Below are positions 18,468 to 61,761 of a stretch of DNA of 64,000 nucleotides, piece after piece; the stretch's first letter is position 1; every line of letters starts with the position of its first letter. The translations under genes were made by a program, and so were the position numbers. A model generated the notes under the pieces. The model was not told the DNA's origin. It was given only the letters and a program-made list of their open reading frames with translations, and made no database searches. The DNA comes from Macrostomum lignano (lineage: Eukaryota): NCBI GenBank assembly GCA_002269645.1, contig NIVC01003195.1, forward strand, positions 48,632-112,631, in the 5' to 3' direction.

Positions 18468-18903
18468 TATTTTAAGAGTGATTAGTTGTTCACTTGTGAA
18501 TTAAATGGTAAAGGATTAAAAAAATTGTAATAAGCTGACTCACCAAGAACCTTTGCTCACGTTAAGAAACGAGTTACAAGCCAAGCCAGTGCTGACTGAA
18601 CAAGCGCTGTCAGACATTTTAGCAGAACCGCCGCAAATAATGAAAAAAAGTCGAAAAAAAGAAATCAATCATCAGTCATCGGGAGTTCTTCTTTCCAGGG
18701 CTCGCCGCTTGAAACCTCCGACCGAACTTCGGGCGTTTTTAGTACCTCGCAAACAAAGCTCCCCCTGCAGTCACGTCTAGCTATATATAGAAAGAAAACT
18801 ACCTCAGCCAGTTGCGCCAGCCGACGCCTAACAAGAACAGATTATTGCTGAACGCCGATTTGGGGTTGCAAGCGCCTTTCCAATTGCATGGTTGCGAACA
18901 AAC

Positions 18904-21900: not shown

Positions 21901-24900
21901 ACCTGGCCTTGGTTGAGCTTGGACAGGTGGTATACTATTGTAGCCGAGGTTAGAGTCTTGCCCGTGCCTGGCGGGCCTTGAATAAGGCTTAGCGGTCGCT
22001 GCAGAACAGTCTTGACAGCGTAAACCTGATCCGAAGTGGGGTTGGCACAGCTTGTTAAACACCTGCCCAATTCTAAGGTAAACAATTATTCCAATTAAAA
22101 AACTATTGCCAATAATAGAATATCGTAGAATATATAACAGAATATAGCCAGTCTCCAGGTAAAACACACCTGATCAGACTCCCATCAAAGCCAGTCCCCA
22201 GGTAAAACACACCTGATCAGACTCCCACCAAAGCCAGTCCCCAGGTAAAACACACCTGATCAGAACTGCCATCAAAGCCAGTCCCCAGGTAAAACACACC
22301 TGATCAGAACTCCCATCAAAGCCACTCCCCAGGTAAAACACACCTGATCAGAACTGCCATCAAAGCCACTCCCCAGGTAAAACACACCTGATCAGAACTG
22401 CCATCAAAGCCAGTCCCCAGGTAAAACACACCTGATCAGAACTGCCACCAAAGACAGTCCCCAGGTAAAACACACCTGATCAGAACTGCCACCAAAGCCA
22501 GTCCCCAGGTAAAACACACCTGATCAGAACTGCCACCAAAGCCAGTCCCCAGGTAAAACACACCTGATCAGAACTGCCACCAAAGACAGTCCCCAGGTAA
22601 AACACACCTGATCAGAACTGCCACCAAAGCCAGTCCCCAGGTAAAACACACCTGATCAGAACTGCCACCAAAGCCAGTCCCCAGGTAAAACACACCTGAT
22701 CAGAACTGCCACCAAAGACAGTCCCCAGGTAAAACACACCTGATCATAACTGCCAACAAAGCCACTCCCCAGGTAAAACACACCTGATCAGAACTGCCAA
22801 CAAAGCCAGTCCCCAGGTAAAACACACCTGATCAGAACTGCCATCAAAGCCAGTCCCCAGGTAAAACACACCTGATCAGAACTGCCACCAAAGACAGTCT
22901 CCAGGTAAAACACACCTGATCAGAACTGCCATCAAAGCCAGTCCCCAGGTAAAACACACCTGATCAGAACTCCCATCAAAGCCACTCCCCAGGTAAAACA
23001 CACCTGATCAGAACTGCCATCAAAGCCACTCCCCAGGTAAAACACACCTGATCAGAACTGCCATCAAAGCCAGTCCCCAGGTAAAACACACCTGATCAGA
23101 ACTGCCACCAAAGCCAGTCCCCAGGTAAAACACACCTGATCAGAACTGCCACCAAAGCCAGTCCCCAGGTAAAACACACCTGATCAGAACTGCCACCAAA
23201 GCCAGTCCCCAGGTAAAACACACCTGATCAGAACTGCCACCAAAGACAGTCCCCAGGTAAAACACACCTGATCAGAACTGCCAACAAAGCCACTCCCCAG
23301 GTAAAACACACCTGATCAGAACTGCCAACAAAGCCAGTCCCCAGGTAAAACACACCTGATCAGAACTGCCATCAAAGCCAGTCCCCAGGTAAAACACACC
23401 TGATCAGAACTGCCACCAAAGACAGTCTCCAGGTAAAACACACCTGATCAGAACTGCCATCAAAGCCAGTCCCCAGGTAAAACACACCTGATCAGAACTG
23501 CCATCAAAGCCACTCCCCAGGTAAAACACACCTGATCAGAACTGCCATCAAAGCCAGTCCCCAGGTAAAACACACCTGATCAGAACTGCCATCAAAGCCA
23601 CTCCCAGGTAAAACACACCTGATCAGAACTGCCACCAAACCCAGTCCCCAGGTAAAACACACCTGATCAGAACTGCCATCAAAGCCACTCCCCAGGTAAA
23701 ACACACCTGATCAGAACTGCCATCAAAGCCAGTCCCCAGGTAAAACACACCTGATCAGAACTGCCATCAAAGCCAGTCCCCAGGTAAAACTCACCTGACT
23801 GTGATTGAGCTCAGGCAGACCAGGTGCAGAGAACCGCTTAGGCAGTTGGCACTTGAACACAATATCGTCAGTGTCGTGCCCAAGCAGTTTGTGATAGATA
23901 TGAGAAGTGACGCAGTGCTCATCGACGGCAAACTTTTTTAGGGCCGATTGCATTCGATCGAAGCTGATGCTTTTCCAAACGTATTCTACCGCGAAATTGT
24001 GCTGGCATTCTATCGGCGTGCCGGCGTTGTTCTTCAACTCGATGGCCACATCGTCGCTGTGATTGTCGGGTATCTTGATGACGTTTCCGACGCCAACCCA
24101 AGGCTTGGCCGAGTCGCCCATATAGCGAAGTCGCAGCTCGTCGCCGTGCATAATTTTTAATTCTTCGTTAGCGCGAGAAAATTGAAAATAGGCTATTCGC
24201 TTTTTATTGAGGCCCATGTCCCAGCGCACGCTGATGCTTTCCTGAGTCTGAGACTCCTTCAGCCGGCGGTCGTACTCTGCCTCCAGTTTAACTAGCGGGC
24301 CCAGTATGTTCTGATACTGATAGGCATCCTGGTAGCGCAGCGTCACCCGATTCGGCTCCTCGTCTACGCCCGGCTTCTCCAGATCCTCTAGCGTGGCGGC
24401 CGGGTTGCTTTTCCACAGTTCCTCCAGCTTGTTCATCTGGGCGGCGCTCATCTGCCTGGCCCGCATCTGCTCCTCCGACGAGGGCACCTTCACCTGCGGA
24501 TCGTAGGGTGGGGTCGGATCAGTGTGACAGTTGGTGGACAAGCATGTCAATCAGTGACAGCTGGTGGACAAGCATGTCAATCAGTGTGACAGCTGGTGGA
24601 CAAGCATGTCAATCAGTGTGACAGCTGGTGGACAAGCATGTCAATCAGTGTGACAGCTGGTGGACAAGCATGTCAATCAGTGTGACAGCTGGTGGACAAG
24701 CATGTCAATCAGTGTGACAGCTGGTGGACAAGCATGTCAATCAGTGTGACAGCTGGTGGACAAGCATGTCAATCAGTGTGACAGCTGGTGGACAAGCATG
24801 TCAATCAGTGTGACAGCTGGTGGACAAGCATGTCAATCAGTGTGACAGCTGGTGGACAAGCATGTCAATCAGTGTGACAGCTGGTGGACAAGCATGTCAA

Positions 24901-27900
24901 TCAGTGTGACAGCTGGTGGACAAGCATGTCAATCAGTGTGACAGCTGGTGGACAAGCATGTCAATCAGTGTGACAGCTGGTGGACAAGCATGTCAATCAG
25001 TGTGACAGCTGGTGGACAAGCATGTCAATCAGTGTGACAGCTGGTGGACAAGCATGTCAATCAGTGTGACAGCTGGTGGACAAGCATGTCAATCAGTGTG
25101 ACAGCTGGTGGACAAGCATGTCAATCAGTGTGACAGCTGGTGGACAAGCATGTCAATCAGTGTGACAGCTGGTGGACAAGCATGTCAATCAGTGTGACAG
25201 CTGGTGGACAAGCATGTCAATCAGTGTGACAGCTGGTGGACAAGCATGTCAATCAGTGTGACAGCTGGTGGACAAGCATGTCAATCAGTGTGACAGCTGG
25301 TGGACAAGCATGTCAATCAGTGTGACAGCTGGTGGACAAGCATGTCAATCAGTGTGACAGCTGGTGGACAAGCATGTCAATCAGTGTGACAGCTGGTGGA
25401 CAAGCATGTCAATCAGTGTGACAGCTGGTGGACAAGCATGTCAATCAGTGTGACAGTTGGTGGACAAGCATGTCAATCAGTGTGACAGTTGGTGGACAAG
25501 CATGTCAATCAGTGTGACAGCTGGTGGACAAGCATGTCAATCAGTGTGACAGGCAGAGGGGGCCACACACAAAGCCGTGATGATCAGTATGACAGGCAGA
25601 GGGGGCACACAAAACTGTGACAATAGCATAGAAAATAAAACCCAAAGCCTCCCACCATCCAGGACAGAAACTGGCGATCCTGGATAAGCGGCTCCCACAG
25701 ATTGGAGTCCAAATTCATGTCCTTCTTCTGCGAGGCGCACGGCTGTCTGCAGAGCAGCACAACCACGGAATCTGCTTTAGCCGGAATGTAGCCCAGCAGA
25801 AAGACATTCTTAGATCCGCAGACGTAGCACTCCAGCTCAGTAGCGCCAAGCGGACTGTCCTTGTGCAGACTAACAGTCTTAGTCTTAGCCCGGACCAGAT
25901 GATTAACAATATGCGATCCGCTAGTATTGCCGCGGCCATTGCAGAACCATTTCTGTGTGGAATTGCACAGCACAACGCAGGCCGGATCGTGAATGCCGCA
26001 GTAGGCGCAGGCGTGCTCAGGCAGGTCGCGGGTGTACAACGCGCCGCCAGCGCCAACACCGACGGCATTCTCGGCGTCGTCTTCGTCCTCGAAGGTTAGA
26101 CCGTTCAGGTTCAGCGCGCCTGCGGCCGAGTCAATGTCGGCTACAGCCGAGGCCAGGCCAAAACCGTCCGCCTGGGTTGCATTAGGATGGATCCAATCGA
26201 TAAGGCAATTATTTACTATGCTTATATATTACTATTATTGATAAGTAGCAAGAAAAGAATGTGTTGCATCCTTTTTAAAATTTTGTGCTAACCCAGCATC
26301 ATGGGTGGTATTTTGGGACCCTTATCTTCTTCTAATGTCTAAGAATATACAGAGGTTAGATGGGATCAAAATCTTTAGGATTGGGCAAGATCATGATCTT
26401 ATCCTATTTTACAAAAGTTACTTAAGTAAGTTACACATTAGAGTTAGAGCTAGGATGGGATTCTAATCCTGATTCCAAAATTGAATAGAGACATATAGAG
26501 ATTGAGAATATATATTTTGATTATGAAAAAGCTTGTCTTGAGCTTTATTTTAGCCCTATCAATCATCTGAATATTAAATATTATTTTGAAACATAGTTTC
26601 AGACTTAAGAGATTAAGAAAAATTTCAAATTGCATCCTAAAATTAAAAGTCCAAAAATTATATTGTCAAAGGAAAAAAGTTTTTACTAGGGGTTGGACAA
26701 GATCTTAATCTTAATCTTGATCATCAAGATCTTGGCACTTTTTAAAATCTTGATATTGGTTTCAAGATCTTGAAAAAAGTCAATATTTGCAACTACAGAC
26801 TTTGTAACTATGATATTCTTCAGTTATGGCAACCACCCAGTTTGCTTCCTGATATTACTTTAAAGTTTGAATTAGTGCTGCAACATAGTACCATGGTATA
26901 AAAAATATCTGGCCAAAAAGGATAGGAAATGATATCAGAAAATCTTTTAGCCTCTAGCTCATCTACTACTTTATCACTATCTATTACTCTATCATTTTAT
27001 CTACTGCTCTATCAATTGCTACTTTTACTGCCCTATCTATTGCACTATCTACTACTGCAGCTATTGCTCCATTTACTTCTATCTAGTGCTCAAAGGCACT
27101 ATATTGTGGCACCAATTCAAACTTGAAAATAATATTGCAAAAGAAACTGGAGCCTTGCCAATATTATTATACTTAAATCATAAATCTCAAGCTCAAACTT
27201 TAAGCTCAATAATTAAAACAATCAAATCGTTTTTTATTATCATCACTGTATTATATACATTTAACAAGTAACAATAATAACATTGAAAAATAGTGCAAAT
27301 AATAGTGTAAATAGACCTACTAGATGCCTATAGTTTAGAACAGTCTATATATACCCAAAAAAACTATTTTTTGTATATGTCAATGTATGCTGAGTACATT
27401 ATTTAAGCAAAGCTTCAAATCAATCAATTTAATAACTGTATTAGTAGAATAGTGATTTTTATATTTAATTTCAATTAGATGAAGTCAAAATCTAGAAATA
27501 ATTGTAATTGTATATATTTTATGTTTATATATAAAAAGCAAAATTTGTGATTTTTGTTATAATTTTAAATCATTACCTTGTAGAAAAGATGGGAATGAAT
27601 TTTGCATCAAATAGTTCTTAAATTTTACCATTATAATGCATGGATGACTATTGTTACCATTATCAATAATATGATTTTTTAATTTTTGGTGCATATCATA
27701 GACCAAGATATTAAATTTGTATACCAAAAGCCCAAAATCACTTTTTGAATGCCAATATATATGCCAAATTTCTTGAGAAATTTTCACTATACATGCCTTC
27801 TTCTGGACTATGGCTAGATGCTAATTAGACTTAATCTTGAATATTAATTGAATTTTAATTATCTCAAAAGTAGAAATCTAAAGTCTTGAAAATCTTGAAA

Positions 27901-32084: not shown

Positions 32085-32138
32085 TTTCTAGAAATTTCCA
32101 GAATGAAGTCAGTGGGCAAGAAAATTCGAGAAGCTTCC
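32085..32138 (+). promoter_or_regulatory. Two perfect heat-shock elements (4 alternating nGAAn units each)
   Basis: TTC-ta-GAA-at-TTC-ca-GAA at 32086-32103 and GAA-aa-TTC-ga-GAA-gc-TTC at 32120-32137. Both lie just upstream of a TATA box and a small HSP gene. Confidence 0.92.
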
Positions 32139-32150
32139 TCAGTGCCAGTC

Positions 32151-32157
32151 TATAAAA
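32151..32157 (+). promoter_or_regulatory. TATA box (TATAAAA) of the small HSP gene
   Basis: Consensus TATAAAA about 13 bp after the second HSE. It implies the real start codon is 32280, not the ORF-track start at 32103. Confidence 0.85.
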
Positions 32158-32279
32158 GCGAGACAGCTGGATCCGAGAGTGAGGCAGGATTGGAGCACAC
32201 AAAGCAACCGCAAGCAAAGCAATCTCAAGCAAAGCGAATCAATCGCCAAACTCTATCATTTACAAGCGACACAGCAAGC

Positions 32280-33104
32280 ATGTCTCTGTGGATCGCACCG
32301 AGCAACGTGTACACGCCGTTCTCGCACTCTCTGCCGCTCGTGGCAGCCATGAGCGAGCTGGACGACTGGCTGACGCCGGAGTATGACCCGCTGGTGCAGC
32401 TGCTGCGGCACAGAGGTCCGAGGCGACCGCGTCAGTGGAGCCGGACTGTGGACCTTCGCGGCTTCTCGCCGAAGGACGTGTCGGTGAAGCGGGAGGAGCG
32501 GAAGGTGCGGGTGGTGGCGCGGCTGGAGAACGGCGAGGACGTGACGGAGGTGAAGCGGACGGTGGAGCTGCCGGAGGAAGTGGACGCAGAGAAGCTGAAC
32601 AGCGGCTTCACCCGGGACGGCATGCTGGTGCTGCAGGCGCCGTTCAAAGAGCAGCAGAAGCAGCAGCAGCTGAAGCAGCAGGAGCAGCAGCAGCAGCAGC
32701 AGAAACCGCAGGGCGACTCCGTGTGGGACGAGCTGCGCGGCCTGCTGCGAGGCGACCTGCAGTCTGAGGGGTCCGGCCAGCTGGTGGAGGCGGACGATGG
32801 CAGCAAGCGGTTCAAGGCGGAGCTGTCGGTGCGCGAGTTCAAGCCGGACGAGATTCGCGTGCGACAGCAGGGCGACTGCGTGCTGGTGGAGGCGGAGCAC
32901 AAGGAGGAGGCCGGTGGGCAGCGGGTCCACAAGCGGCTGGAGCGAATCTACCAGCTGCCCGACGGCACCAAGCTGGACCAGGTGGTGAGCAAGCTCAGCC
33001 ACGATGGCCGGCTGTGCATCGAGGCGCCGTTCGAGGCTCCGGCAGCTCGGGAGCAGCCGCAGCTGAAGGACGTTCCCATGGAAACGGAGAAGGCCGCAGA
33101 GTGA
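32280..33104 (+). CDS. Small heat-shock protein (HSP20 family) with two alpha-crystallin domains, p40/Tsp36-like, 274 aa, intronless
   Basis: Domain 1: VDLRGFSPKDVSV..KRTVELPEEVDAEKLNSGFTRDGMLVLQAP. Domain 2: LSVREFKPDEIRV..RIYQLPDGTKLDQVVSKLSHDGRLCIEAP. A Gln-rich linker joins them, and a C-terminal IXI/V-like DVPME motif follows. HSE/TATA promoter upstream. Confidence 0.93.
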   Translation: MSLWIAPSNVYTPFSHSLPLVAAMSELDDWLTPEYDPLVQLLRHRGPRRPRQWSRTVDLRGFSPKDVSVKREERKVRVVARLENGEDVTEVKRTVELPEEVDAEKLNSGFTRDGMLVLQAPFKEQQKQQQLKQQEQQQQQQKPQGDSVWDELRGLLRGDLQSEGSGQLVEADDGSKRFKAELSVREFKPDEIRVRQQGDCVLVEAEHKEEAGGQRVHKRLERIYQLPDGTKLDQVVSKLSHDGRLCIEAPFEAPAAREQPQLKDVPMETEKAAE

Positions 33105-43250: not shown

Positions 43251-43533
43251 CTCTTTCCTCTTTATCCGCTAGTCTCCCTCTTCCGATTCTCGCTACTCTT
43301 CTTCTCTACTTACTTTGCTTCCTCTGCTACCTACTCTACTGACCTTTCTGTTCGCTATTTGTACCAACACAAGAAAAACAAGGTGTTAATCATGAAAATT
43401 TACTCGCTTATTGCATTTGATTTTCATTAGAGATTTGCCAGCGAAGAGCATTGCTCTCATATTGTCAAGAATGACGATCCTGTCCTGTCCTGTCCAGTCA
43501 CTGATATGATTTCGATATCTTCGAATCTGCCAG

Positions 43534-45498
<1,965 letters not shown>

Positions 45499-45935: not shown

Positions 45936-48576
45936 CTATTCTATTTCTAATTTCGAAAATCTTTTGGTAACACACAATTCGAATCAATAATTTTAAACGC
46001 AACCGTTATGACAAGAAAGATACAACAAAGTTTTACAATATATTAGTAGCAATGAGTAAAGAAAAAAATTCAAACGTTTAAACTCTTTAAAAAAGGTTTT
46101 ATAATTATTTTGGTTTAAAATTTTTGCGATTGCTTATAAAAAGCACAGAAAATTAAATCAATGGACGAAAAGAAATAACAAGCAAAAATTCTATTGACTG
46201 TCACAGGGTATAGGTCTATTAATATATTAGAGACACGGTTGAAAATTAATTGATTCTAATAGGTAAAAACATTTTGTGTTTACTAACTCTTTGCTATAGA
46301 AATGGCTAGTATTTTATTATTTAGATACATTTCGTGTGTGGGGCCTTCAATCTATGTTTAAAGAACCAAGAAATTTGCTGCACATAAACAGTTTCTAATA
46401 AAAATAGTAAGGGCCTTATCTTTAAATAGATAAAAAATAAACGATAACTAATGTTTTGGCTTTGTATTAGGGAGGAGTTTTTTGCTAGGCCTAAGTAATT
46501 TTTCTATATATTGATAGTGATAGGCTAGGCTAGCCAATTCCCTTGGTAGGGCCTAGTGGCTGAGGGAGGCCTAATATCACAATCAAAATGGCCAGTGTAT
46601 TAGACAGTATGGATCTAGTACTTTTAATTTAATTATAAAATATGGAATTTAGAAAAAAACATTTAAAACAATGGAAATACAATAAATTTTTCTTTTTTCT
46701 TTTAATTAAGCATAAAATATAAATAAACTAAAATGTTAGATTATTAGAGAAGTAAAAGTAAAGATTATCTCAATATTTTATTCAGCTTATAATAATGTAA
46801 TGTATAGTGTGTTATATGGCATTTGTATAGTATTAACCTATACAAAAGATAATTTAGAAAATAGAATAATATAAAAAACTAGGCCCTAGTATTAAATATA
46901 CTAAATCTCTAATATTTGTATGTCTATAACGCTCTAGAGATTGCAATTCTTCACCGATTTTCATCGTGTTTTTGCCAAAATTACTAGCTAAGGCTATAAA
47001 AAGAGCTGTCTACCAGCTAGCAAATAATTTTTTCTCATTTCTCATATTGGTATGCAATGTAAATAAAGCAATTGTCTTGCCAACAGGGATATATCTAAAA
47101 AAAACGAGACACTCGGGACATGTCCCCCTTTAGAAAGAGGTTTTTATTGTTTTTATATTTTATTTTTAGTTTTATTGCTAATATTTGAGTATGCACTGTG
47201 CAGTTAAATTTAGCTTAGAAGCAAATATACTAAAAAGCCCCTATGATATTGTTTTTTTGAATATTTAATCCTTTTAACAATGAGCTATAAGCTCATTGAA
47301 ATTTATATATCAATTTACACACTTGACATCTTTTGGTAAAGAAATATTGAAAATTGGTTGAGCTATTTGGCAGATAAGCAATTGCAAACATATAAGATTA
47401 TTATTATTAGTAGACCTTTACTAAGGCTATTTGATTACTAGGGCCTATATGATATAGGCCCTTATATAAATGTTTCTTTTATAATTAGGCCTCTAATAAA
47501 AAGAAAGATATTTATATGAATAGTATGCAAACTATTAATATAGGTATAGTTATTTAAATATATAGTAATAGCTATTCCTAGACTTATCTAAATATTTAGA
47601 TATAATTAAAAGTTAACCTATATCATTTTTCATATTGTTGATCTAGTCTTAGGAAAGTGACCAATTTTAGTATTTATATATAACATTTTTTATACTTGTA
47701 TATCTTTTGAAGGAAATAACATTCTGTTGAAATTAAAAAAGCAATAAAACTGTAAAATACTTATCTATATAGTGATACATTGCATTCAATTATGATTTTG
47801 CAATCAGTATATATGGAAAAATAGTGGGAAAGGTATGGATCAATTTTCCCACTATTTTTATGATTTCTTTATATTAAGGCAAAATGCTTTGTCATCTAGT
47901 ACTCTATCTATATTTTTAGGTAGGCATTTTTGTGACTTACCTTGGCTAGGCCCTAGATCAGCTAGCTTGGCTAGGTATTAGGCATATACAAAACTTTATT
48001 TTATCCTATAGTTGTGCAATAAAAATTCAGTTTTGTATTGTTTTTTTATTTTATAAGACCAAGCCAAAAATATATTTGCAAATGAAATGTTTTGTTCCTT
48101 TTTGAATCAAGTATATAAGTATATAACTATTCCTAACAAATTGCACTTAGACAGAGTGTGAATCCAGGATGCCATATAGCACTGTGAATGTGACATTTTA
48201 TAAAACCTTTGACTCAAATATTCTTTTTAATTTGTATAACCTGAATATTTATGGTTTAATTGGCTTAAACATTGGTTTTATAAACTAATGGCTGTAGCAA
48301 TATGCATTAAGTTTATTTATTCAACCTTATCTTTATGCACTGGCGCATAACTTGATAAAGAATTTCTGGAATAACTCTGGGAGTTGCGCACCTCCAAGTT
48401 GACCTACTAGGTGTCGAATCCTTGAGCTGAACTTTCTTAAACGCTCATTGACCTTGTGGCTCTTCCATCTTGAAGCAGTCTTAGTTGCTGTTCGGGCGCG
48501 CGCCTTATTACCATTGGCCAATCGCTCCGATGCGTAAAAAGCAGGCCTAAGCGCTTTATTTTGGAATTCTCTATAA

Positions 48577-50841
48577 ATGGAGACAACAGCCAGGCGGCCT
48601 AGCAATTGCGGCGCCGCCTCCGGCACAGTGGCGGCAGTTGCAGCTGCCTCCGCAGTCAAGGCGGGCGGCGTCAGTGGAGGACTTGGCACTAAAAGTGCAC
48701 CATCCCCGCCATCAGCATCAAACAATGGCGACGATTTATATGTTGTTGGCAAAATTCTAGCCGAGAAAACTGAGAATGGCATGTCTTATTTTAAAGTTCG
48801 CTGGAAAAATTATCCGCCATCGAATGACACCTGGGAGCCTGAGGACAATTTAACAGTTGTATCCGATATGATTCAAGCCTTCCGATCGGCTCGAGCCAGT
48901 AAGCTCAGCAGCGGCAGCAGCAGCAATCGGGCATCGACTGGCGGCAATAGTAACAGCAGCAATAGCAGCGGCAGCAGAAAGCGTCCAGCGCCAAAGCGAT
49001 GGGATCAAGGCTCCTCAACAACGGCAGCGGCGGCAGCAATGCATTTGCCAACAACTGGCGGTGGGTCGGCAAAGACTAACAAATTGGTGGACAGTCTGGA
49101 CGAAAATCGGCCAAAATCCCGGCGTCGGCTGAACGGTGGCAGCGGAGTTAGCGTCGGCCGAGAGAGCGAGGACGCATCGGCCGAGGACACAACCGGGGAG
49201 GAGGGCAATTCAAACAATTCCGAAGGCGGCAGCAGTTTCGCTAACTCAATTGGCTCGTCGAGCACTTTAGAAATCGAAGGCAAACCGACTGTCTCGGCTG
49301 CCGCTGCAACAACTGGAAGCGGCGGACAAGTTTTGAAAGACTCAACAATAGCGTCTGCCGCCACGGTTGGAGAGTCAGTGCAACCGCCAACGCCTACGCA
49401 GCAATCCGCTTCGTCGGCGTCATCAACAAAGCCATCGCAGCATCAGTCGCCGCTGCTGGCGGATTTGCTCGGTTCCGCTAAGCGAGACTCAACCGCCGCT
49501 GCGACAGCCTCTGCCTCGGCCTCGGCCGCAGCTTCAGCCGCTGGCGACGCCTCCGATGAACGATCAGACAAAGCGGCGTCCGCGACCGCCTCGGCGGTGT
49601 CCTCGACGCCGACTCCGCCGCCTCCGCCGCAGCAACAACAGCAGCCGTCGACATCATCGTCAGCGTCGGTCTCAACGACGCCAATCGAAGAGACAGCGGC
49701 CGACTTTCGCTACGTAGCTAATCAGGCTGAACTGCTGCGCGCTCACCTAGCCGGACAGGCTGCCCGACTGCCGCCAAACCGGCCGCCTCCGCTATCCTGG
49801 CCGCTGCTCTGCCGAGCGGTTGAACGAGGCGACTGGCCGGCTGTTAGCCGGACCGTCAGCCAGCAGGAGCCGCAGCTGACTATAGCAGACTTGCAGCGGC
49901 TTCTCTGTTTAGCCGTGGCCCGCGGTCACGCTTGCATAGTTGATTTGTTACTAGATACGGCTGGCACCGTGGCTCACCTATCAGAGACTATAGACATTGA
50001 TTGTCGCTCCTCCGAGTCCGGTCTAACACTGCTAATGCTGGCAGTTGAACGAGACTCGCCGGCATTAGTTCATCGCCTGTTGCTAGCCGGCGCCGATCCC
50101 AATTTGCTTTGTCCGGCCGGCAATTCCACTTTGCAGCGTGCTATTAAGCTGCGCAAGCCGCATTTAGTAGACGCATTGTGCAGCCTTGGCGGTGTCGATT
50201 TTGGTGTAGAAACCTGCGAAGGTCAAACTCCGCTACGGTACGCCAGGCGCGCTTGTCCTCAAAGTGCAGCCGTACTGCAATTGTACGTTGGCCATCTGTG
50301 CCGGACTATGCACGACCATCTGGCCGATCATCTGGCTAGGCTAGGCTTCGCTCCTGCGGCGCTATTATTTGCTCCACGCTACCTGCGACCACAGCCAGGC
50401 CTTGTGTGCCAGGTGCGCTTTCGCCTGCCCGAAGAGGAGGCCTCCAAATATGGCCACGCCGTCGCCCTGCTGCACTGCCGTCAGCGTCCCTGCTCGGCCT
50501 TGATGCGCCGTCAGCCTTGCCCGGATCCAATTTCAATGCACTGCTGGCTATCCGACGGGCCCTGCTTAGTTGAATCTGTTCAGCTCAATGGCGCTATTCA
50601 ACGATCTCTAACAGCCTGCGGCGCACCGTTTCTTACTGCGCTAACCGGTCCAACAGCTGGCGAGAATTGCTTGCGCATCGCTTTTCCCAGATCCTCCGCT
50701 TCAGCTTGCGTTGCCGGCGAGGCGGCGGAACTTCGCTCTACACTGGCCAGCTCCTCCGCGTCTGCCGGCCTGTGCGGCCTCAGAATTGGCGTGTTCGCCT
50801 TCCGCCTGTCCGCACTGCCGCCCGCTGGTGCAGCGGACTGA
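48577..50841 (+). CDS. MPHOSPH8: Chromodomain + ankyrin-repeat protein, M-phase phosphoprotein 8 (MPP8, HUSH subunit)-like, 754 aa, intronless
   Basis: The chromodomain LYVVGKIL..YFKVRWKNYPPSNDTWEPEDNL has the aromatic cage residues. A long low-complexity linker leads to ankyrin repeats (GLTLLMLAV..LLLAGADPN, GQTPLRYA). The C-terminal motifs GPCLVESVQLN, GENCLRI and LRIGVFAFRL correspond to the recalled human MPP8 motifs GPCSVQAVVLN, GPNKLFI and LLIGAYRV. Confidence 0.85.
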   Translation: METTARRPSNCGAASGTVAAVAAASAVKAGGVSGGLGTKSAPSPPSASNNGDDLYVVGKILAEKTENGMSYFKVRWKNYPPSNDTWEPEDNLTVVSDMIQAFRSARASKLSSGSSSNRASTGGNSNSSNSSGSRKRPAPKRWDQGSSTTAAAAAMHLPTTGGGSAKTNKLVDSLDENRPKSRRRLNGGSGVSVGRESEDASAEDTTGEEGNSNNSEGGSSFANSIGSSSTLEIEGKPTVSAAAATTGSGGQVLKDSTIASAATVGESVQPPTPTQQSASSASSTKPSQHQSPLLADLLGSAKRDSTAAATASASASAAASAAGDASDERSDKAASATASAVSSTPTPPPPPQQQQQPSTSSSASVSTTPIEETAADFRYVANQAELLRAHLAGQAARLPPNRPPPLSWPLLCRAVERGDWPAVSRTVSQQEPQLTIADLQRLLCLAVARGHACIVDLLLDTAGTVAHLSETIDIDCRSSESGLTLLMLAVERDSPALVHRLLLAGADPNLLCPAGNSTLQRAIKLRKPHLVDALCSLGGVDFGVETCEGQTPLRYARRACPQSAAVLQLYVGHLCRTMHDHLADHLARLGFAPAALLFAPRYLRPQPGLVCQVRFRLPEEEASKYGHAVALLHCRQRPCSALMRRQPCPDPISMHCWLSDGPCLVESVQLNGAIQRSLTACGAPFLTALTGPTAGENCLRIAFPRSSASACVAGEAAELRSTLASSSASAGLCGLRIGVFAFRLSALPPAGAAD

Positions 50842-52624
50842 CGTTTTTATACATACACACCGATTTCTCTCTATATATATATTGTTAGAGATACCAATTC
50901 TGTTATCCATGCTTTACATTAGCTAATTATTAGTTTTGTTATTTGTTTGTTTTTTAGCTTATGATGACATCTTTTCTCTCTGTTATCTTTATATCTCTTC
51001 GCTGTTTGTAGGCCTATGCTCGGTAGAGTTTGTCTGTTTGTCTCTCTGTTTATTGATCATTAACATGTTCATTGGCAGCAGCACGGTGGTTTCCCCATTG
51101 TTTTACTAGTAAAATAGCGAATTCATACAGACTTAACCATATAAACTCCTAACTATATATGCATATATGTCATTCTCGGTTTCTCCATTTTTATCGACCC
51201 ACTTCTGAGTGGAGTGATGCGACACCATGGTTTCTTTACGGTAATGATAATCTTAATTATCCTTCTATGTGTGAAAGATCTTTTTCCAGCTTCCTTCTCG
51301 CCAATGCGATTCGTTTGTTTGACTCATAGATACTAGAGTAACCAGATATTATGTCACTCGCAATTTAAACCTGTGTAAAGTAGAGTGTCTACTTTTTTCA
51401 GTAGTTTGTTAGCGCATTGTCGCTTAAATTTAATTTGGCTGCTAATATTTCCTTTCCTTCCTCGAGGCTTGCGGCCTCGGAGGCATAATGGGTTAAGAAT
51501 GAAAAATTAGCAATTAACCTGATGTACACAAGTAAACGCAAGACAAACGAAGCACAGCCTACGGGGGCAGGCCCAACCTAGCTCAGCCAATAAGAGAGCA
51601 GTAAGGAGAGAGGTCAAAGTCAGACGGACGAAGCTCAGGCTTAAGGGGTAGACCCGATCTCGCTCAGCCAATGAGAGAGCAGTAAGAAAAGAGGTCAAAG
51701 TGAGTCACGAGCGGGAAAGAGGAAAGCCCAACTGTTTATGGGTCTGGCTGGGGCGCCACACCCTTTCTCTCTTGCTGGCTATGCACACTCACTGGATTTG
51801 GGTGCAGCTTTAAACAAGGTGATGATGCTACTTTGATGGGTATACTTGTAGGAAGCAAAAGACGATTGTTGCAGCATCAAAAACTTGTAAATAGTTTGTA
51901 AAATTTAATGCAAAAATGCTAATTTTGCTACTCAAAACAGAGTCCATCAGCGTATTTTTTACGAGTGATACATCTAGTTATTCTACTATCTGTGGCTCAA
52001 CTGAATCTACGTCGGGTGTATTGTATTGTTCAAGTTTAACTAGCTCATCTCCTTATTTGCCGTCCGTAGTTCGTACACCTATTTATTACTGGTTAGGAAA
52101 TGAGGCTTAGCTTAGCTAGGTCTTGCGTATTATTTTATATAACCTGAATACATATAATAATTATGATGAAGCAAAGCAATAGAAGCTATTAGTAGATCAT
52201 TTTCGCAGCTTTTTGCATCAGATGATGTCATGTAATACTGTTAGTAGTAGTAGGTCGAAGTAGTTAGCATGAATCGTTGGATTTCGTGTTCTATGAGTTT
52301 TAATGTTCTTTAAAAATGTAGAAAGTTATAGTATAATGTTCCAGTTATCAGAATGGGAATGGACACAAAACAATTCATAAATTCACCTTATAACTTGAAT
52401 CGAATACTAGAGATGTTTACTTTAAGTATTCGAAATTTGCACTTGTAATTAAAAATGCTTTTGTTTATATAGTTCCATTCTATGCACCGATGTGAAGAAT
52501 GCGCGTACGCTGCTTAAAATTTTATAGCAAATGTATACGAGATATGCATTAATTCGCACTGTTCTTTTCATGCGCAACTGTGTACAGGGGTGAATATTTT
52601 GGCCTTCATTTCATTAATGTACTC

Positions 52625-52765
52625 TGTCTTTGTCTCTGTCTGTCTGGCCTGCCTGTCTGTCTGTCTGTCTGTTTGTCTGCCTGCCTGTCTGTCTGTCTTA
52701 GTGTCTTAGTGTCTGTCTGCCTGCCTGCCTGTCTGGCTGTCTGTCTGTCTGTCTGTCTGCCTGCC

Positions 52766-52822
<57 letters not shown>

Positions 52823-52877
52823 GCCTGCCTGTCTGTCTTAGTGTCTGTCCGTCTGTCTGTCTGTCTGCCTTCCTGCC

Positions 52878-52921
<44 letters not shown>

Positions 52922-52953
52922 GGTCTGCCTTCCTGCCTGTCTGTCTGTCTGCC

Positions 52954-53034
<81 letters not shown>

Positions 53035-53090
53035 GCCTACCTGCCTGCCTGTCTGCCTGCCTGCCTGCCTGCCTGCCTGCTTGCCTGTCT
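52625..53090. repeat. (TGTC)n/(TGCC)n microsatellite
   Basis: Visible periodicity. Confidence 0.97.
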
Positions 53091-54239
53091 CTATGAATTG
53101 TTGGCGCACCTTTTCTTTATCTAGTTTGCTTTAATTGTGCCTTAAATCTATAAACAAATTCTGAGGACTAGCTATTGTAATAATATGCTTTTTAACTAAT
53201 TGTAGTGTTAATGTTAACTCCCTGTCCCTTGCGCTTGCTTCTGGGGTGTTGTTTGTGTTCTAGTAGCGCACACTTCTTATTAGCTGTTACAAATATTACT
53301 GAATTATAAATGTTAATTGAGGGGCTCGGTAATATTTTGGCCAGTACAATGTCTTCATATAGTTATCTATTGTTAAGCCATTAGCAGTCTCCCCCAAGCC
53401 TAATTATTATTATTAATTATGAAAACAGCGTGTATCGGTGCTGCAATTTCTATTTTTTTTTCTATTGTTTGTCCCAGTTTACCGTGTCTGTTCGTGCGGT
53501 TTCTCTACTGAATTAAACTGTTTAATTTGTTTCCATTTCTATTGCTGTTTTTTAGATCTTCTTCTTCTGGCTGTCAAGAGTTTTTTATAACTAATATTTT
53601 CTCTTCCCTTCTTTGATGCAGTTGAACCAGGCAGATAGAGAGAGCGGCAGTTGCGGTGGTGTCTGTAGCTTTGGTAGTTATTTGCATAGTGATTTAGTAA
53701 GATCATAGTTCAGTGTTATCAAGTCCTTAGAGGCGCTAATTATAGTTCTAACAGGTTTAGAAATTTATATGATACACTGATGACCGCTTATTAATTGATG
53801 CTTTTGAACTGTTAATTATGTCATTATAACCAATTATTGTCTCGTATTCATATTATATATATCTTATATCTATTGCCCTCCTTACTACACTAAGCTAATA
53901 ATCTGCATTGACAGTAAACTTGATCTTTATTAAAGCTTGACAGAAGCGGTCATGTTCGTTGATCATGTTGAAAAAATTGTGCTTTTTCTATTAAATGCAG
54001 CAAATTTAATTTCCCTGGCTATTTGCTCCACCCGCCCACCAGCCTTCTGTAATTTCACTTGCAAAAAGTAAATCCTCAGTTACTCATATTAATAAACATA
54101 ATATACACTTGCGTGTGTTTTGTACACGTTTCAATTTTTGGATTCGGCAGTCGGTTCTGTTTCGTCTAAGTTATTAAAAGCATTTTTATTAGCAGTTTAT
54201 ATGAAAACAAGTAGATTTCCTCGGAATATCATTGAGTCA

Positions 54240-57058: not shown

Positions 57059-59516
57059 ATGGAAGAAAACGGCCAGAAAAAAGTCATGAGCGCCAGATGG
57101 GAGGTGCCTCTGAGCGATAGGGTGCATGTTGTGCAGTTTGACCATGGTACGACCTCGGGCCGGAGGGCCATCTTTCTTAACGGAGAGGTAAGGTTTGAAT
57201 GCCGAAGTCCCGTGTCTTAATTCAATCCCAAAAAATGCTAGATCGCTTTCACAAGCTCGAAATTTCACATTGTCGAAAGTCTTGTTTGTCGGACGTCACA
57301 ACCATAAGCTTGGAAACCGAAAGGTTAGAGAAGGTTAGAGATTTTGAAGGTTAGGGATTGTGAAGATTCGAGCTTGTGAAGGTTAAATATTGTGAAGGTT
57401 AGAGATTGTGAATGTTCAAGCTTGTGAAGGTTAAATATTGTGAAGGTTTGAGATTGTGAATGTTTGAGATTGCGAAGGTTAAAGATTGTGAAGGTTAGAA
57501 ATTGTGAATGTTCGAGATTGTGAATGTTCGAGATTGTGAATGTTCGAGATTGTGAAGGTTAGAGATTGTAAATGTTAGAGATTGTGAATGTTAGAGATTG
57601 TGAATGTTAGAGATTGTGAAGGTTAGAGATTGTGAATGTTCGAGATTGTGAATGTTCGAGATTGTGAATGTTAGAGATTGTGAATGTTTGAGATTGTGAA
57701 TGTTAGAGATTGTGAATGTTAGAGATTGTGAAGGTTGGAAATTGTGAATGTTAGAGATTGTGAAGGTTAGAGATTGTGAATGTTCAAGTTCAAGATTGTG
57801 AATGTTCGAGATTGTGAAGGTTGGAAATTGTGAATGTTTGAGATTGTGAATGTTTGAGATTGTGAAGGTTCGAGATTGTGAAGGTTTGAGCTTGTGAAGG
57901 TTTGAGCTTGTGAAGGTTAAATATTGTGAATGTTTGAGATTGTGAATGTTTAAGATTGTGAAGGTTCGAGATTGTGAAGGTTCGAGCTTGTGAAGGTTCG
58001 AGATTGTGAATGTTTGAGATTGTGAATGTTTAAGATTGTGAAGGTTTGAGCTTGTGAAGGTTTGAGCTTGTGAAGGTTAAATATTGTGAATTTTTGAGAT
58101 TGTGAAGGTTCGAGATTGTGAAGGTTCGAGATTGTGAATGTTCGAGATTGTGAATGTTTGAGATTGTGAATGTTTGAGATTGTGAAGGTTTGAGATTGTG
58201 GATGTTCGAGATTGTGAATGTTAAAGATTGTGAATGTTTGAGATTGTGAATGTTTGAGATTGTGAAGGTTAGAGATTGTGAAGGTTAGAGATTGTGAAGG
58301 TTAGATCTTGTGAAGGTTCGAGCTTGTGAAGGTTAGAGCTTGTGAAGGTTAGATATTGTGAAGGTTCGAGCTTGTGCGAGATTCTGTCTGAACGCTATCT
58401 AAGATGCCCTCCCTCGTGCTCCGCATTTCTCCGCCAGTGCATCAAGCGCGAAGACTTCATGTTCAAGCTAGTTGGCATTGAGCATTTCAAAATCGGCAGC
58501 ACTCCCTGCACAATTGAAATCGTCGCAGCAGACGATTTTAATTATCATTATAAACTGTTGGTGAATGGCAAATCCGTGCAGAGCTTCAGCGAGAACCAGG
58601 CGCGCATTCTCAAATGCTGGCTGCCTATTATTGATGGCGAGTTCGTGAGAATTGTACTGGAGAAGGATTCGCTTGATGTCTACGTTGATGGAAAAGTCGT
58701 TGAGACAGCTGTGAGTTTCCTGGGCTCTATCTTGATCCCTATCATTTTATTTCTGGCCAGTTTTGTCAGATCCCAGACTGTTGTCTCCTCCAAGATCCTC
58801 ATTTGCTGTTCCACCTGCCTCCCAGATCCTCAGTTGCTGTTCCACCAGCCTCCCAGATCCTCAGTTTCTGTTCCACCAGCCTCCCAGATCCTCAGTTTCT
58901 GTTCCACCAGCCTCCCAGATCCTCAGTTTCTGTTCCACCAGCCTCCCAGATCCTCAGTTTCTGTTCCACCAGCCTCCCAGATCCTCAGTTTCTGTTCCAC
59001 CAGCCTCCCAGATCCTCAGTTTCTGTTCCACCAGCCTCCCAGATCCTCAGTTTCTGTTCCACCAGCCTCCCAGATCCTCAGTTTCTGTTCCACCAGCCTC
59101 CCAGATCCTCAGTTTCTGTTCCACCAGCCTCCCAGATCCTCAGTTTCTGTTCCACCAGCCTCCCAGATCCTCAGTTCTTGGGTCATCGCCATCCTCACAT
59201 GCCTTGAGCCTTAATGTTTAGACGGATTTGATTTACTATAGAAGAAAGTCTTGCTACTTTATCAGCCTGACGAAGACCCCATTCCCACAATATCCCACAT
59301 CCCCAGGGCGAGTTCACAGACGAAGGCACTGAGACGCACTTTACAGTAGGCGATCATGCCTGCTTCATCCGTGCCGTGTCTAGCGGCAAGCGGCGCACAG
59401 GCATTATACAGACTTTGTTCATTGACGACCACGAGGTGACTGAAGCGGCCGTCGATCAGTCGTGGTTAGTTTTTTACACAATTGTGCGCCTTTTAGCTAC
59501 TGTACGGAGTGGTTAA
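57059..59516 (+). CDS. FAIM: Fas apoptotic inhibitory molecule (FAIM1 family). Exons 57059-57187, 58438-58710, 59307-59516 (the last exon could instead splice at 59464)
   Basis: WEVPLSDRVHVVQFDHGTTSGRRAIFLNGE / REDFMFKLVG..RIVLEKDSLDVYVDG / GEFTDEGTETHF..AVSSGKRRTGII. All junctions are phase-0 GT/AG. Confidence 0.93.
57320..58372. repeat. 16-bp minisatellite (GAGATTGTGAATGTTC), FAIM intron 1
   Basis: About 65 degenerate tandem copies. Confidence 0.95.
58780..59175. repeat. 31-bp minisatellite (CCAGATCCTCAGTTTCTGTTCCACCAGCCTC), FAIM intron 2
   Basis: About 12 tandem copies. Confidence 0.96.
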
Positions 59517-60474: not shown

Positions 60475-61761
60475 CTAACAGGCGGGATGAATATTATGAT
60501 TGGAAAAATGCCAGACCCGAAGAATTTGAGACAGGCAATGCGGCAATCTTTTGCAGCAGTAGGCTGCCCAGGCTTGCGTCCTTGGCAACGCGGGCACTTT
60601 CGGCCAGCTGAAGCAGCGATGCGTGACAGGCCACGCCGCATCGCTGCGACTTGACGGTGAGCTGGTAGGCAGCGCCGAATCTGGACAGCGACGGCGCAAC
60701 GGCTGCTGGTCCAACAGCAGCTGACGGCTGGTGCGCAGGTCGCAGAGCAGGCAAGCCCGGAACAGCGGCGTCCTTTCAACTGTGGCCAGCTCTGCGATGA
60801 GCGGCCCGGTGGCCACCAGACGAATCAACTCGTCGACTGCGGCGTCAGCAACGCCGGAGGCTGCGGCATGGCGCAAAGCGACAGCTCTGGCTAGCAGGCC
60901 AGCGCAACCGACAATAAGTCTGTCCGTTAGCTGGCCTGCCCAGTCAGAGAAGATGCTCACAGCGCTAGCGTGCAGACGCAATTTGACAAACGCAGCTTCC
61001 ATCAGTTTGTCTTCGCAGCGGCGCAGTGCCACCCTAGTGGAAGCCGTTGCCACAGCCGCGGTGTCGATAGCAGAGTTGACAAGCTGCAATCGGTGCATAA
61101 TTTCATTGGCTGCTGCTTCAGCCATTTGGTCGGCGGCTGCTTTCTCTTTTGATTTGTCTGCAGTTTTTGGTCGCTGCGACTGCGACGGTGGCGGAGGCGT
61201 GAGCAGCGGTTGACGCTGGAATCGGGGCGCAGCGCTGGCGCCACGGACAGTCTTGGTGTGAGTTCGCACCTTGGCGCAGGCGCTGCACCTGGCGCCATTG
61301 ACTGTAGTGTCTCCGCAGCTGCGACTGTCGGCCGGTCCCAAGCAGATGTTTGTCAGCTGCAGACGCACGCAGATTCGATTCAAAGCGGCCAGAAATTTGG
61401 CGTGCGCACTCGCTCCTCCGTCGGCATAGTCAACGCTGAACGTCTGCAGGCCGTCCGGAGCGACGTAGTCCGGAGTTCGAACCCGGCGCAACTGGCAGCC
61501 CAGCTGCGCTTTTAACAGAGGAGCTTCGGTGCCGAGTACGCAGATCAAATTAGCCAAGTTGGTTGGGATGACGAATAGAAACTGGGTTACTGTGGCAATC
61601 GAACAGCTGTCCCTGCTCCGCTGATGAATCTCCAGCCAGTGCAGGTGCTGTTGGCGGAGCAGGCTGTTTAGATAAACTGGTGAGCAGAAGTCCAGACGGA
61701 AAGCAGATTGAGTCTCCAGTTGTTCCTGTTGCGTTTTATTGCTGCTCATTGTGTTGGTCAT
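60475..61761 (-). CDS. Hypothetical protein, 428 aa, intronless, with a possible degenerate KH-like segment; C-terminal frame uncertain
   Basis: Long non-repetitive GC-rich ORF with an acceptor-like CTTCAG ~13 nt before the ATG. FVIPTNLANLICVLGTEAPLLKAQLGCQL weakly resembles a KH fold start. Confidence 0.65.
   Translation of the reverse strand: MTNTMSSNKTQQEQLETQSAFRLDFCSPVYLNSLLRQQHLHWLEIHQRSRDSCSIATVTQFLFVIPTNLANLICVLGTEAPLLKAQLGCQLRRVRTPDYVAPDGLQTFSVDYADGGASAHAKFLAALNRICVRLQLTNICLGPADSRSCGDTTVNGARCSACAKVRTHTKTVRGASAAPRFQRQPLLTPPPPSQSQRPKTADKSKEKAAADQMAEAAANEIMHRLQLVNSAIDTAAVATASTRVALRRCEDKLMEAAFVKLRLHASAVSIFSDWAGQLTDRLIVGCAGLLARAVALRHAAASGVADAAVDELIRLVATGPLIAELATVERTPLFRACLLCDLRTSRQLLLDQQPLRRRCPDSALPTSSPSSRSDAAWPVTHRCFSWPKVPALPRTQAWAAYCCKRLPHCLSQILRVWHFSNHNIHPAC

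Follow-up and report, generated by a model that had tools for sequence, protein, structure and literature searches.

A long-branch member of the MPP8 (MPHOSPH8) family with complete domain architecture, encoded by a single-exon coding sequence in the flatworm Macrostomum lignano

The DNA analysed here is a stretch of 64,000 nucleotides from the flatworm Macrostomum lignano (assembly GCA_002269645.1, contig NIVC01003195.1), hereafter called the window, and the gene under study is its longest open reading frame (ORF) by far, which runs uninterrupted through 754 codons. This gene is a real, very diverged, long-branch member of the MPP8 (MPHOSPH8) family, and its product has the complete architecture of that family, with a chromodomain and ankyrin repeats as well as a PINIT-like β-sandwich. 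The explanation that we favour, and that we consider probable, is that the gene is a functional MPP8 member belonging to one of two old paralogue lineages, that its product has a role like that of MPP8 in the HUSH complex, and that its introns were lost before the two lineages separated by duplication.

The complete single-exon coding sequence (CDS), delimited by ORF calling and by its match in GenBank, comprises 754 codons and a stop and occupies positions 48577..50841 of the plus strand, on which all the features of the gene given below also lie. An in-frame TAA (48574..48576), read from the sequence, abuts the ATG and therefore precludes any upstream extension of the ORF without splicing; as the second methionine falls within the chromodomain, Met1 is the sole start that yields an intact one. 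The GenBank counterpart of the protein is a near-identical "hypothetical protein", BOX15_Mlig014748g4, which is distinguished by the residue changes T38A, A307T and S479P. It is annotated in GCA_002269645.1 as one exon of exactly 2265 bp for the 754 codons, in agreement with the first-pass annotation of this DNA, which had called the gene intronless; that status rests on annotation and concerns the CDS only, so that the untranslated regions may contain introns. The gene annotation of this assembly has been derived from a genome-guided transcriptome assembly. Between the window and the GenBank locus, 11 of the 2265 coding nucleotides differ (8 synonymous, 3 non-synonymous) and the flanks carry insertions and deletions, because of which the two loci are separate alleles or homeologues of a partly duplicated genome. 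The ratio of non-synonymous to synonymous differences (pN/pS) between them is 0.14 (binomial P = 0.002), and the gene is under purifying selection. Its sense strand contains 20.8% A and 59% GC.

The chromodomain (residues 51-107; 48727..48897) was delimited from its Pfam Chromo match and from its best match in the PDB, the human MPP8 chromodomain (E 2e-10). In the whole protein, Pfam detects Chromo at residues 55-103 (E 3e-12) and ankyrin repeats at residues 471-559 (E 2e-12), and no family was found in the last 195 residues. The top three PDB sequence matches of the chromodomain are all human MPP8 (9h77, 3qo2 and 3lwe; E 2e-10 to 2e-9), with bit scores of 42.9-40.0 as against 35.4 for HP1 and 31.9 for CDYL; CBX and CBX5 proteins also score below MPP8, and the margin is modest. 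In the printed PDB alignment, the aromatic cage residues Y55, W76 and Y79 are aligned with F59, W80 and Y83 of human MPP8, and E87 with E91. As judged from its sequence, the domain would read H3K9me3 or H3K9-like methyl-lysine marks.

The C-terminal region starts with a pre-ankyrin segment (residues 376-394, DFRYVANQAELLRAHLAGQ; 49702..49758), which was set apart for its likeness, by eye, to the vertebrate stretch LEDFQKHL. It is followed by five ankyrin repeats (residues 408-588; 49798..50340), placed from the secondary structure of an AlphaFold2 (AF2) model, the description of the human structure and Pfam, and by a PINIT-like β-sandwich (residues 592-745, HCWLSDGPCLVESVQLNG...GENCLRI...LRIGVFAFRL; 50350..50811), a hallmark of MPP8 C-termini that was recognized by hhalign, tail profile search, alignment, AF2 and Foldseek. 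For human MPP8, crystallography of its C-terminal domain (CTD) has revealed five ankyrin repeats along with a PINIT-like β-sandwich; the human CTD that served as a comparator is 100% identical over 305 residues to PDB chain 8qfb_B. In BLASTP, this human CTD is colinear with flatworm residues 381-754, the alignment (24% identity over 299 residues, pairwise E 8e-8) running through the ankyrin repeats into the tail, and the motifs GPCxVxxVxLN, GxNxL and a terminal LxIG...L are common to the two C-termini. When the two flatworm tails were compared with 17 vertebrate MPP8 tails by hhalign, the probability was 87.5%, with an E value of 3.6e-6 and a score of 41.9. Two hundred column shuffles gave a mean score of 13.3, a maximum of 24.0 and probabilities of at most 7.6%, and the reversed sequence scored 15.2.

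Structure prediction points in the same direction. A first AF2 model of the CTD, made from 13 sequences, had a predicted local distance difference test score (pLDDT) of 69.8 and ranked 8qfb first with a template modelling (TM) score of just 0.36-0.45; it was dropped in favour of a model made from 37 sequences, whose pLDDT is 83.0 and whose predicted TM score (pTM) is 0.80. The latter comprises five ankyrin repeats and a long helix, together with a nine-strand sandwich. Its ankyrin region, with block-mean pLDDT values of 77-98, mostly above 88, contains five helix pairs and then a helix at model residues 181-208, and this elongated last ankyrin helix resembles helix α-10 of human MPP8, the last ankyrin helix there, which is about twice the usual length and runs along the next domain. 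A low-complexity, flatworm-specific insertion in the sandwich (residues 709-733; 50701..50775), delimited by AF2 pLDDT and by an alignment gap, is predicted to be disordered (pLDDT below 50, model residues 329-353) and faces a gap in all other sequences. The top four Foldseek matches in the PDB are chains of 8qfb (E 3.3e-19, root-mean-square deviation 3.5-3.8 Å over about 350 columns), with TM scores of 0.67 when normalized to the query and 0.83 when normalized to the target; the remaining matches are generic ankyrin proteins covering 165-190 columns, that is, the ankyrin half (E ~3e-8). In the model, the sandwich is packed on the ankyrin repeats as in the human CTD. The first-pass annotation had proposed a chromodomain with an aromatic cage, C-terminal motifs that line up with human MPP8 and a complete MPP8 architecture, and had made structural alignment of the C-terminal domain to MPP8 the test of its proposal; these claims are borne out by the Pfam match and the cage residues, by the colinear BLASTP alignment, shared motifs and hhalign score, by the presence of chromodomain, ankyrin repeats and PINIT-like sandwich together, and by the superposition on 8qfb.

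The family to which the gene belongs is large. An exhaustive hmmsearch of 1.84 billion proteins with a tail-only profile brought up nothing but MPP8-type proteins, amounting to 122 cluster representatives (the clusters being drawn at 50% identity) at E<=0.001; for 92 of these, the E value is 1e-10 or less. All the identified matches are from bilaterians. RefSeq already uses the name "M-phase phosphoprotein 8(-like)" for matches from Lingula, Lineus, Dreissena, Mercenaria, Gigantopelta, Biomphalaria, Elysia and Octopus, and for others from Saccoglossus, Anneissia, Patiria, Lytechinus, Holothuria, a mite, a spider and a hagfish. The groups with members so named thus include molluscs (bivalves, gastropods and an octopus), a brachiopod, a nemertean, echinoderms, a hemichordate and chelicerates. 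Matches from Capitella, Magallana, Nucella, Batillaria, unionid mussels, Antedon and the centipede Strigamia lack the name, annelid and centipede members carrying generic names only. In a domain scan of 36 proteins, consisting of the window protein, 32 full-length matches and three vertebrate representatives, Chromo was found in 32 and Ank in all 36. The tail of the flatworm protein conforms to the core block of the family, [HK]C[RW]L..GPCxVxxVxLNGxxQxxLT..F[VL]..GxNxL. The complete MPP8 architecture, including the C-terminal module that binds TASOR in the human protein, is therefore not confined to vertebrates and is, on these sequences, broadly bilaterian; the suggestion of the first-pass annotation that it is noteworthy for an invertebrate does not survive the finding of 122 clusters with this C-terminal domain, many of them already named MPP8(-like).

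The flatworm proteins nevertheless stand far from the rest of the family. By phmmer, the Macrostomum proteins reach at most 32 bits against any non-Macrostomum member, and the tail gave meaningful scores among all the fetched proteins for the Macrostomum copies only, the best other score being 13.9 bits. A word-index homology search with the full window protein returned the gene itself and one paralogue and nothing else, and the human MPP8 chromodomain, used as a query in the same way, yielded pieces of exon size only, with no full-length MPP8 among them. Being long branches, the Macrostomum proteins lack the MPP8 name in annotation. The gene is thus a new, diverged member of a family already widely, if automatically, annotated in invertebrates. 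According to one paper, an MPP8 orthologue is absent in Drosophila and Caenorhabditis, and in another HUSH has been called conserved from fish to mammals; our literature search found no paper that links MPP8 or HUSH to planarians.

A second MPP8 lineage is present in M. lignano, represented by P0002 (BOX15_Mlig020555g1, 780 residues) and its near-copy P0087 (A0A1I8GI69). Between the chromodomain and the C-terminal region, the window protein has a disordered, low-complexity linker rich in Ser, Ala, Thr and Gln (residues 108-375; 48898..49701), which has no Pfam family, gives a gap-filled alignment to the paralogue and is poorly conserved between the two. In the non-vertebrate proteins, the otherwise disordered linker contains a short linear motif that is strongly conserved and has the form FWxDLExGxI, followed after 4-10 residues by DMYSKVK. 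Besides 25 further non-vertebrate members, P0002 (residues ~119-140) and P0087 carry it intact, and it is missing from all nine jawed-vertebrate representatives and from the hagfish. Comparison with the intact motif identifies a degraded remnant in the window protein, KTNKLVDSLDEN..RPKSRRR (residues ~165-184; 49069..49128). The motif looks like a partner-binding site that vertebrates would have lost. To our knowledge no function has been described for it, although the literature was not searched for this motif.

Gene structures add a history to this pair. Capitella has 12 introns and Lineus 13, nine of which coincide in alignment column and phase, and these common introns are ancestral. Three of the nine, at window residues ~573, ~624 and ~681, match vertebrate exon boundaries (human 722/723, 777 and 819/820), which were deduced from genomic ORF fragments. 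Not one of these nine ancestral positions carries an intron in the window gene, nor in P0002. The latter consists of five exons separated by four canonical GT-AG introns of 591, 1175, 339 and 1518 bp, all at non-ancestral sites and one of them within a 12-residue insertion unique to that paralogue. Three of the four are 54-85% tandem repeat, made of (GACA)n, a 16-mer array and a 22-mer minisatellite (locus L002, 7130-8124, 9054-9237 and 9842-11239), which suggests that introns have been gained, or inflated by repeat arrays, in M. lignano, whose genes have been reported to average about five introns. Because both paralogues lack all nine ancestral positions and the introns of P0002 are at new sites, intron loss is probably older than the duplication and no peculiarity of the window copy. 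In the scenario favoured here, the flatworm lineage would have lost every ancestral MPP8 intron before the paralogues split, most simply by an event mediated by reverse transcription, and the P0002 lineage would later have acquired four new ones. No poly(A) tract was found after the stop codon of the window gene. The gene is flanked by an imperfect 26-nt direct repeat (window 48227-48252 and 52130-52155; 85% identity, exact over a core of 13 nt); it was considered as a target-site duplication and rejected, since it is at about chance level in AT-rich DNA and no poly(A) precedes its 3' copy.

The CTD of human MPP8 is a TASOR-binding module, in which F548, R741 and F813 have been shown by mutation to matter for binding and the F548 segment (LEDFQKHL) contacts the SPOC domain of TASOR. 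TASOR-like proteins with a DUF3715-SPOC-DomI organization have been published as present throughout Metazoa, flatworms not being named. The flatworm stretch AELLRAHL (VELFRAHL in the paralogue) resembles LEDFQKHL by eye and was not aligned with it by MAFFT; it could conceivably be the counterpart of the SPOC-contacting segment. If the human case is a guide, the chromodomain would read H3K9me3 or an H3K9-like methyl-lysine, the ankyrin and sandwich module would dock on the SPOC-DomI part of a TASOR-like scaffold, and the resulting HUSH-like complex would maintain H3K9 methylation on repeats. By analogy, a HUSH-like module may exist in the M. lignano genome; among the other large ORFs of the window, no periphilin-like, MORC2 or SETDB1 sequence was found, the wider genome not having been searched. 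That a HUSH-like complex is ancestral to Bilateria and still works in M. lignano with two sub-functionalized MPP8 paralogues is a bolder proposition, which we regard as possible and rather doubtful. In such a pair, one paralogue would have the linker motif and the window gene would lack it.

Several observations weigh against the favoured explanation, or at least against parts of it. The linker motif, kept by almost every other invertebrate member, has been lost from the window protein, whose function may have diverged. By phmmer, the tail alone (residues 560-754) has no pairwise match in the PDB at E<=10, and its similarity to MPP8 is therefore visible solely by profiles or structure; moreover, the alignment given to AF2 contained vertebrate MPP8 sequences, so that the model is not independent of the inference of homology. 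Among the TASOR-contacting residues, flatworm I675 takes the place of human F813, a leucine in AELLRAHL that of F548, and R588 perhaps that of R741, as found in just one of two alignments. Both R741 and F813 are specific to vertebrates, not being conserved in any invertebrate member; since both vary in all of these, neither residue defines the MPP8 family. Lastly, the placing of intron loss before the duplication, and of intron gain after it, is an undated parsimony argument.

An alternative is that the protein is an MPP8 homologue acting without TASOR or periphilin, for example as a stand-alone reader of H3K9 methylation that recruits H3K9 methyltransferases through its chromodomain. The human MPP8 chromodomain has indeed been reported to bind methyl-lysine mimics in SETDB1, ATF7IP, G9a and GLP, and the lack of conservation of R741 and F813 in invertebrates would be in keeping with independence from TASOR. 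However, the ankyrin and PINIT-like module is not known to do anything other than bind TASOR, and its fold and core motifs have been conserved throughout Bilateria; TASOR-like proteins with the matching SPOC-DomI part occur throughout Metazoa; we consider a stand-alone reader unlikely, if a serious contender. Far less probable still, and the least so of the accounts weighed here, is convergence, in which an unrelated chromodomain-ankyrin protein (cpSRP43-like or CEC-like, for instance) would have come to resemble MPP8. Both Chromo and ankyrin domains are promiscuous, and the missing pairwise match of the tail would fit with this account, but the β-sandwich tail shows a specific homology with its MPP8 counterpart, and the whole CTD, including the relative orientation of its domains, superposes on 8qfb and on nothing else.

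The origin of the gene can also be read differently. The first-pass annotation had suggested a retroposed origin, and the loss of all nine ancestral introns speaks for such an event; the same introns are also gone from the intron-bearing paralogue, and the loss is thus not specific to this copy. A narrower version, in which the window gene is a processed retrocopy of a spliced mRNA from an intron-bearing, P0002-like lineage and not the descendant of an intronless ancestor, draws on the contrast between the four canonical introns of the paralogue and their absence here, in a genome whose genes average about five, and on the loss of a linker motif that the paralogue has kept, as might be expected of a relaxed new copy. 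Yet the introns of P0002 are all non-ancestral, and one lies in the 12-residue insertion that is missing from the window protein and from all outgroups; the insertion at this intron site therefore fits better with intron gain after the split. Nor does the DNA bear the marks of retroposition, there being no poly(A) remnant after the stop and no flanking direct repeat other than the 26-nt pair at about chance level, and in its folded domains the window copy is no more diverged from the outgroups than is its paralogue. A retrocopy of this kind seems to us improbable, about as much so as the stand-alone reader. The earlier proposal that the gene is itself a HUSH substrate, or autoregulated, finds no support; in its extreme form, the ORF would be a dead or silenced retro-pseudogene that HUSH-like repression acts on. 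With a transcription unit that is long (2.3 kb) and intronless, the gene does have one of the properties of human HUSH targets. Against this stand an intact frame of 754 codons, the signature of purifying selection in the pN/pS ratio, the conservation of the cage and core motifs and a transcript-derived gene model; the sense strand, with just 20.8% A, differs from the A-rich human targets described in the literature, and a neighbouring 428-residue gene, whose GenBank range is truncated at the edge of the locus, also corresponds to a single ORF, so that intronless CDSs are possibly not rare here. A silenced pseudogene is accordingly very improbable.

The favoured explanation, a functional long-branch MPP8 member whose lineage lost its introns before duplication, has consequences of different reach. 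The most immediate one is that a "hypothetical protein" of M. lignano can now be named MPP8-like, and the value of the finding lies mainly in annotation. The paralogue pair also documents a total loss of ancestral introns, together with four introns at new sites, probably later gains, of which three are largely tandem repeat. The spread of the complete architecture in Bilateria, and its presence in two copies in a flatworm amenable to genetic manipulation, offer a concrete entry point to the question of whether HUSH-type surveillance predates vertebrates. If a HUSH-like complex does work in M. lignano, in which RNA interference and transgenesis are available, this would be the first invertebrate in which the intron-dependent self/non-self discrimination of HUSH could be tested, and such a complex could account for the behaviour of transgenes in this animal.

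Some features of the surrounding DNA may be recorded here. Over the 5' end of the gene lies a 149-residue antisense ORF (window 48333-48782, minus strand) rich in Ala and Pro, which has most probably arisen from the high GC content of the coding strand. The palindrome CCATTGGCCAAT, which forms back-to-back CCAAT boxes, is found 55 bp upstream of the ATG (window 48511-48522), and an 81-nt tandem duplication with one GCCAAT box per copy lies downstream of the gene (window 51532-51693); both may be candidate promoter elements. Elsewhere, the window contains exons of a UPF1-type RNA helicase (AAA_11, UPF1 1B and Zn-binding domains; ~18900-25600, minus strand), interrupted by minisatellite arrays of a 44-mer (22146-23798), a 32-mer (24518-25552) and a 34-mer (20669-20894), as well as an ORF with an HSP20/alpha-crystallin domain (32103-33104, plus strand) and a FAIM1 exon (58342-59214, plus strand). 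The 428-residue single ORF mentioned above (60475-61761, minus strand) has no Pfam match; it matches a GenBank gene of 428 residues that adjoins the MPP8-like gene there and whose range stops at the end of the locus. The window holds more than 25 minisatellite arrays, and the mechanically called ORFs at 703-2139, 43457-44584 and 52580-53134 consist of such arrays only. An 83-nt satellite unit is present in two arrays about 5.7 kb apart (1-275 and 5955-6703).

Within the family, the flatworm protein has the same domain order as human MPP8, with just 19-24% identity in the CTD. Its sandwich carries insertions relative to the human one at residues ~645-660 and 709-733, its linker is rich in Ser and Ala whereas that of human MPP8 is rich in Lys and Glu, and its CDS has no introns in contrast to the multi-exon genes of vertebrates. 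Architecture and C-terminal core pattern are shared with the MPP8-like proteins of Lingula anatina (XP_013386278.1), Lineus longissimus (XP_064627542.1), Saccoglossus kowalevskii (XP_002739805.1) and Capitella teleta (ELU04569.1); the window protein differs from the invertebrate members by its degraded linker motif and by the absence of the nine intron positions common to Capitella and Lineus. Its closest relatives, P0002 and P0087, are 49-50% identical to it in the CTD and have a similar chromodomain and a diverged linker. They share with it the flatworm-specific stretches HCWLSDGPC and LRIGVFAFRL, while P0002 differs in keeping the linker motif and in bearing four introns and the 12-residue insertion.

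More distant comparisons involve the fold and the complex. The sandwich of human MPP8 has been described as a PINIT fold in the paper on its crystal structure, and the flatworm domain, through its match to 8qfb, shares the sandwich fold with Siz/PIAS PINIT domains; no sequence similarity to these was seen, the flatworm protein lacks a RING domain, and no Siz or PIAS structure is among the top 50 Foldseek matches of the two-domain model. As to the complex, a reading with two MPP8 paralogues in M. lignano would loosely parallel the two vertebrate HUSH complexes, which are built on TASOR and TASOR2.

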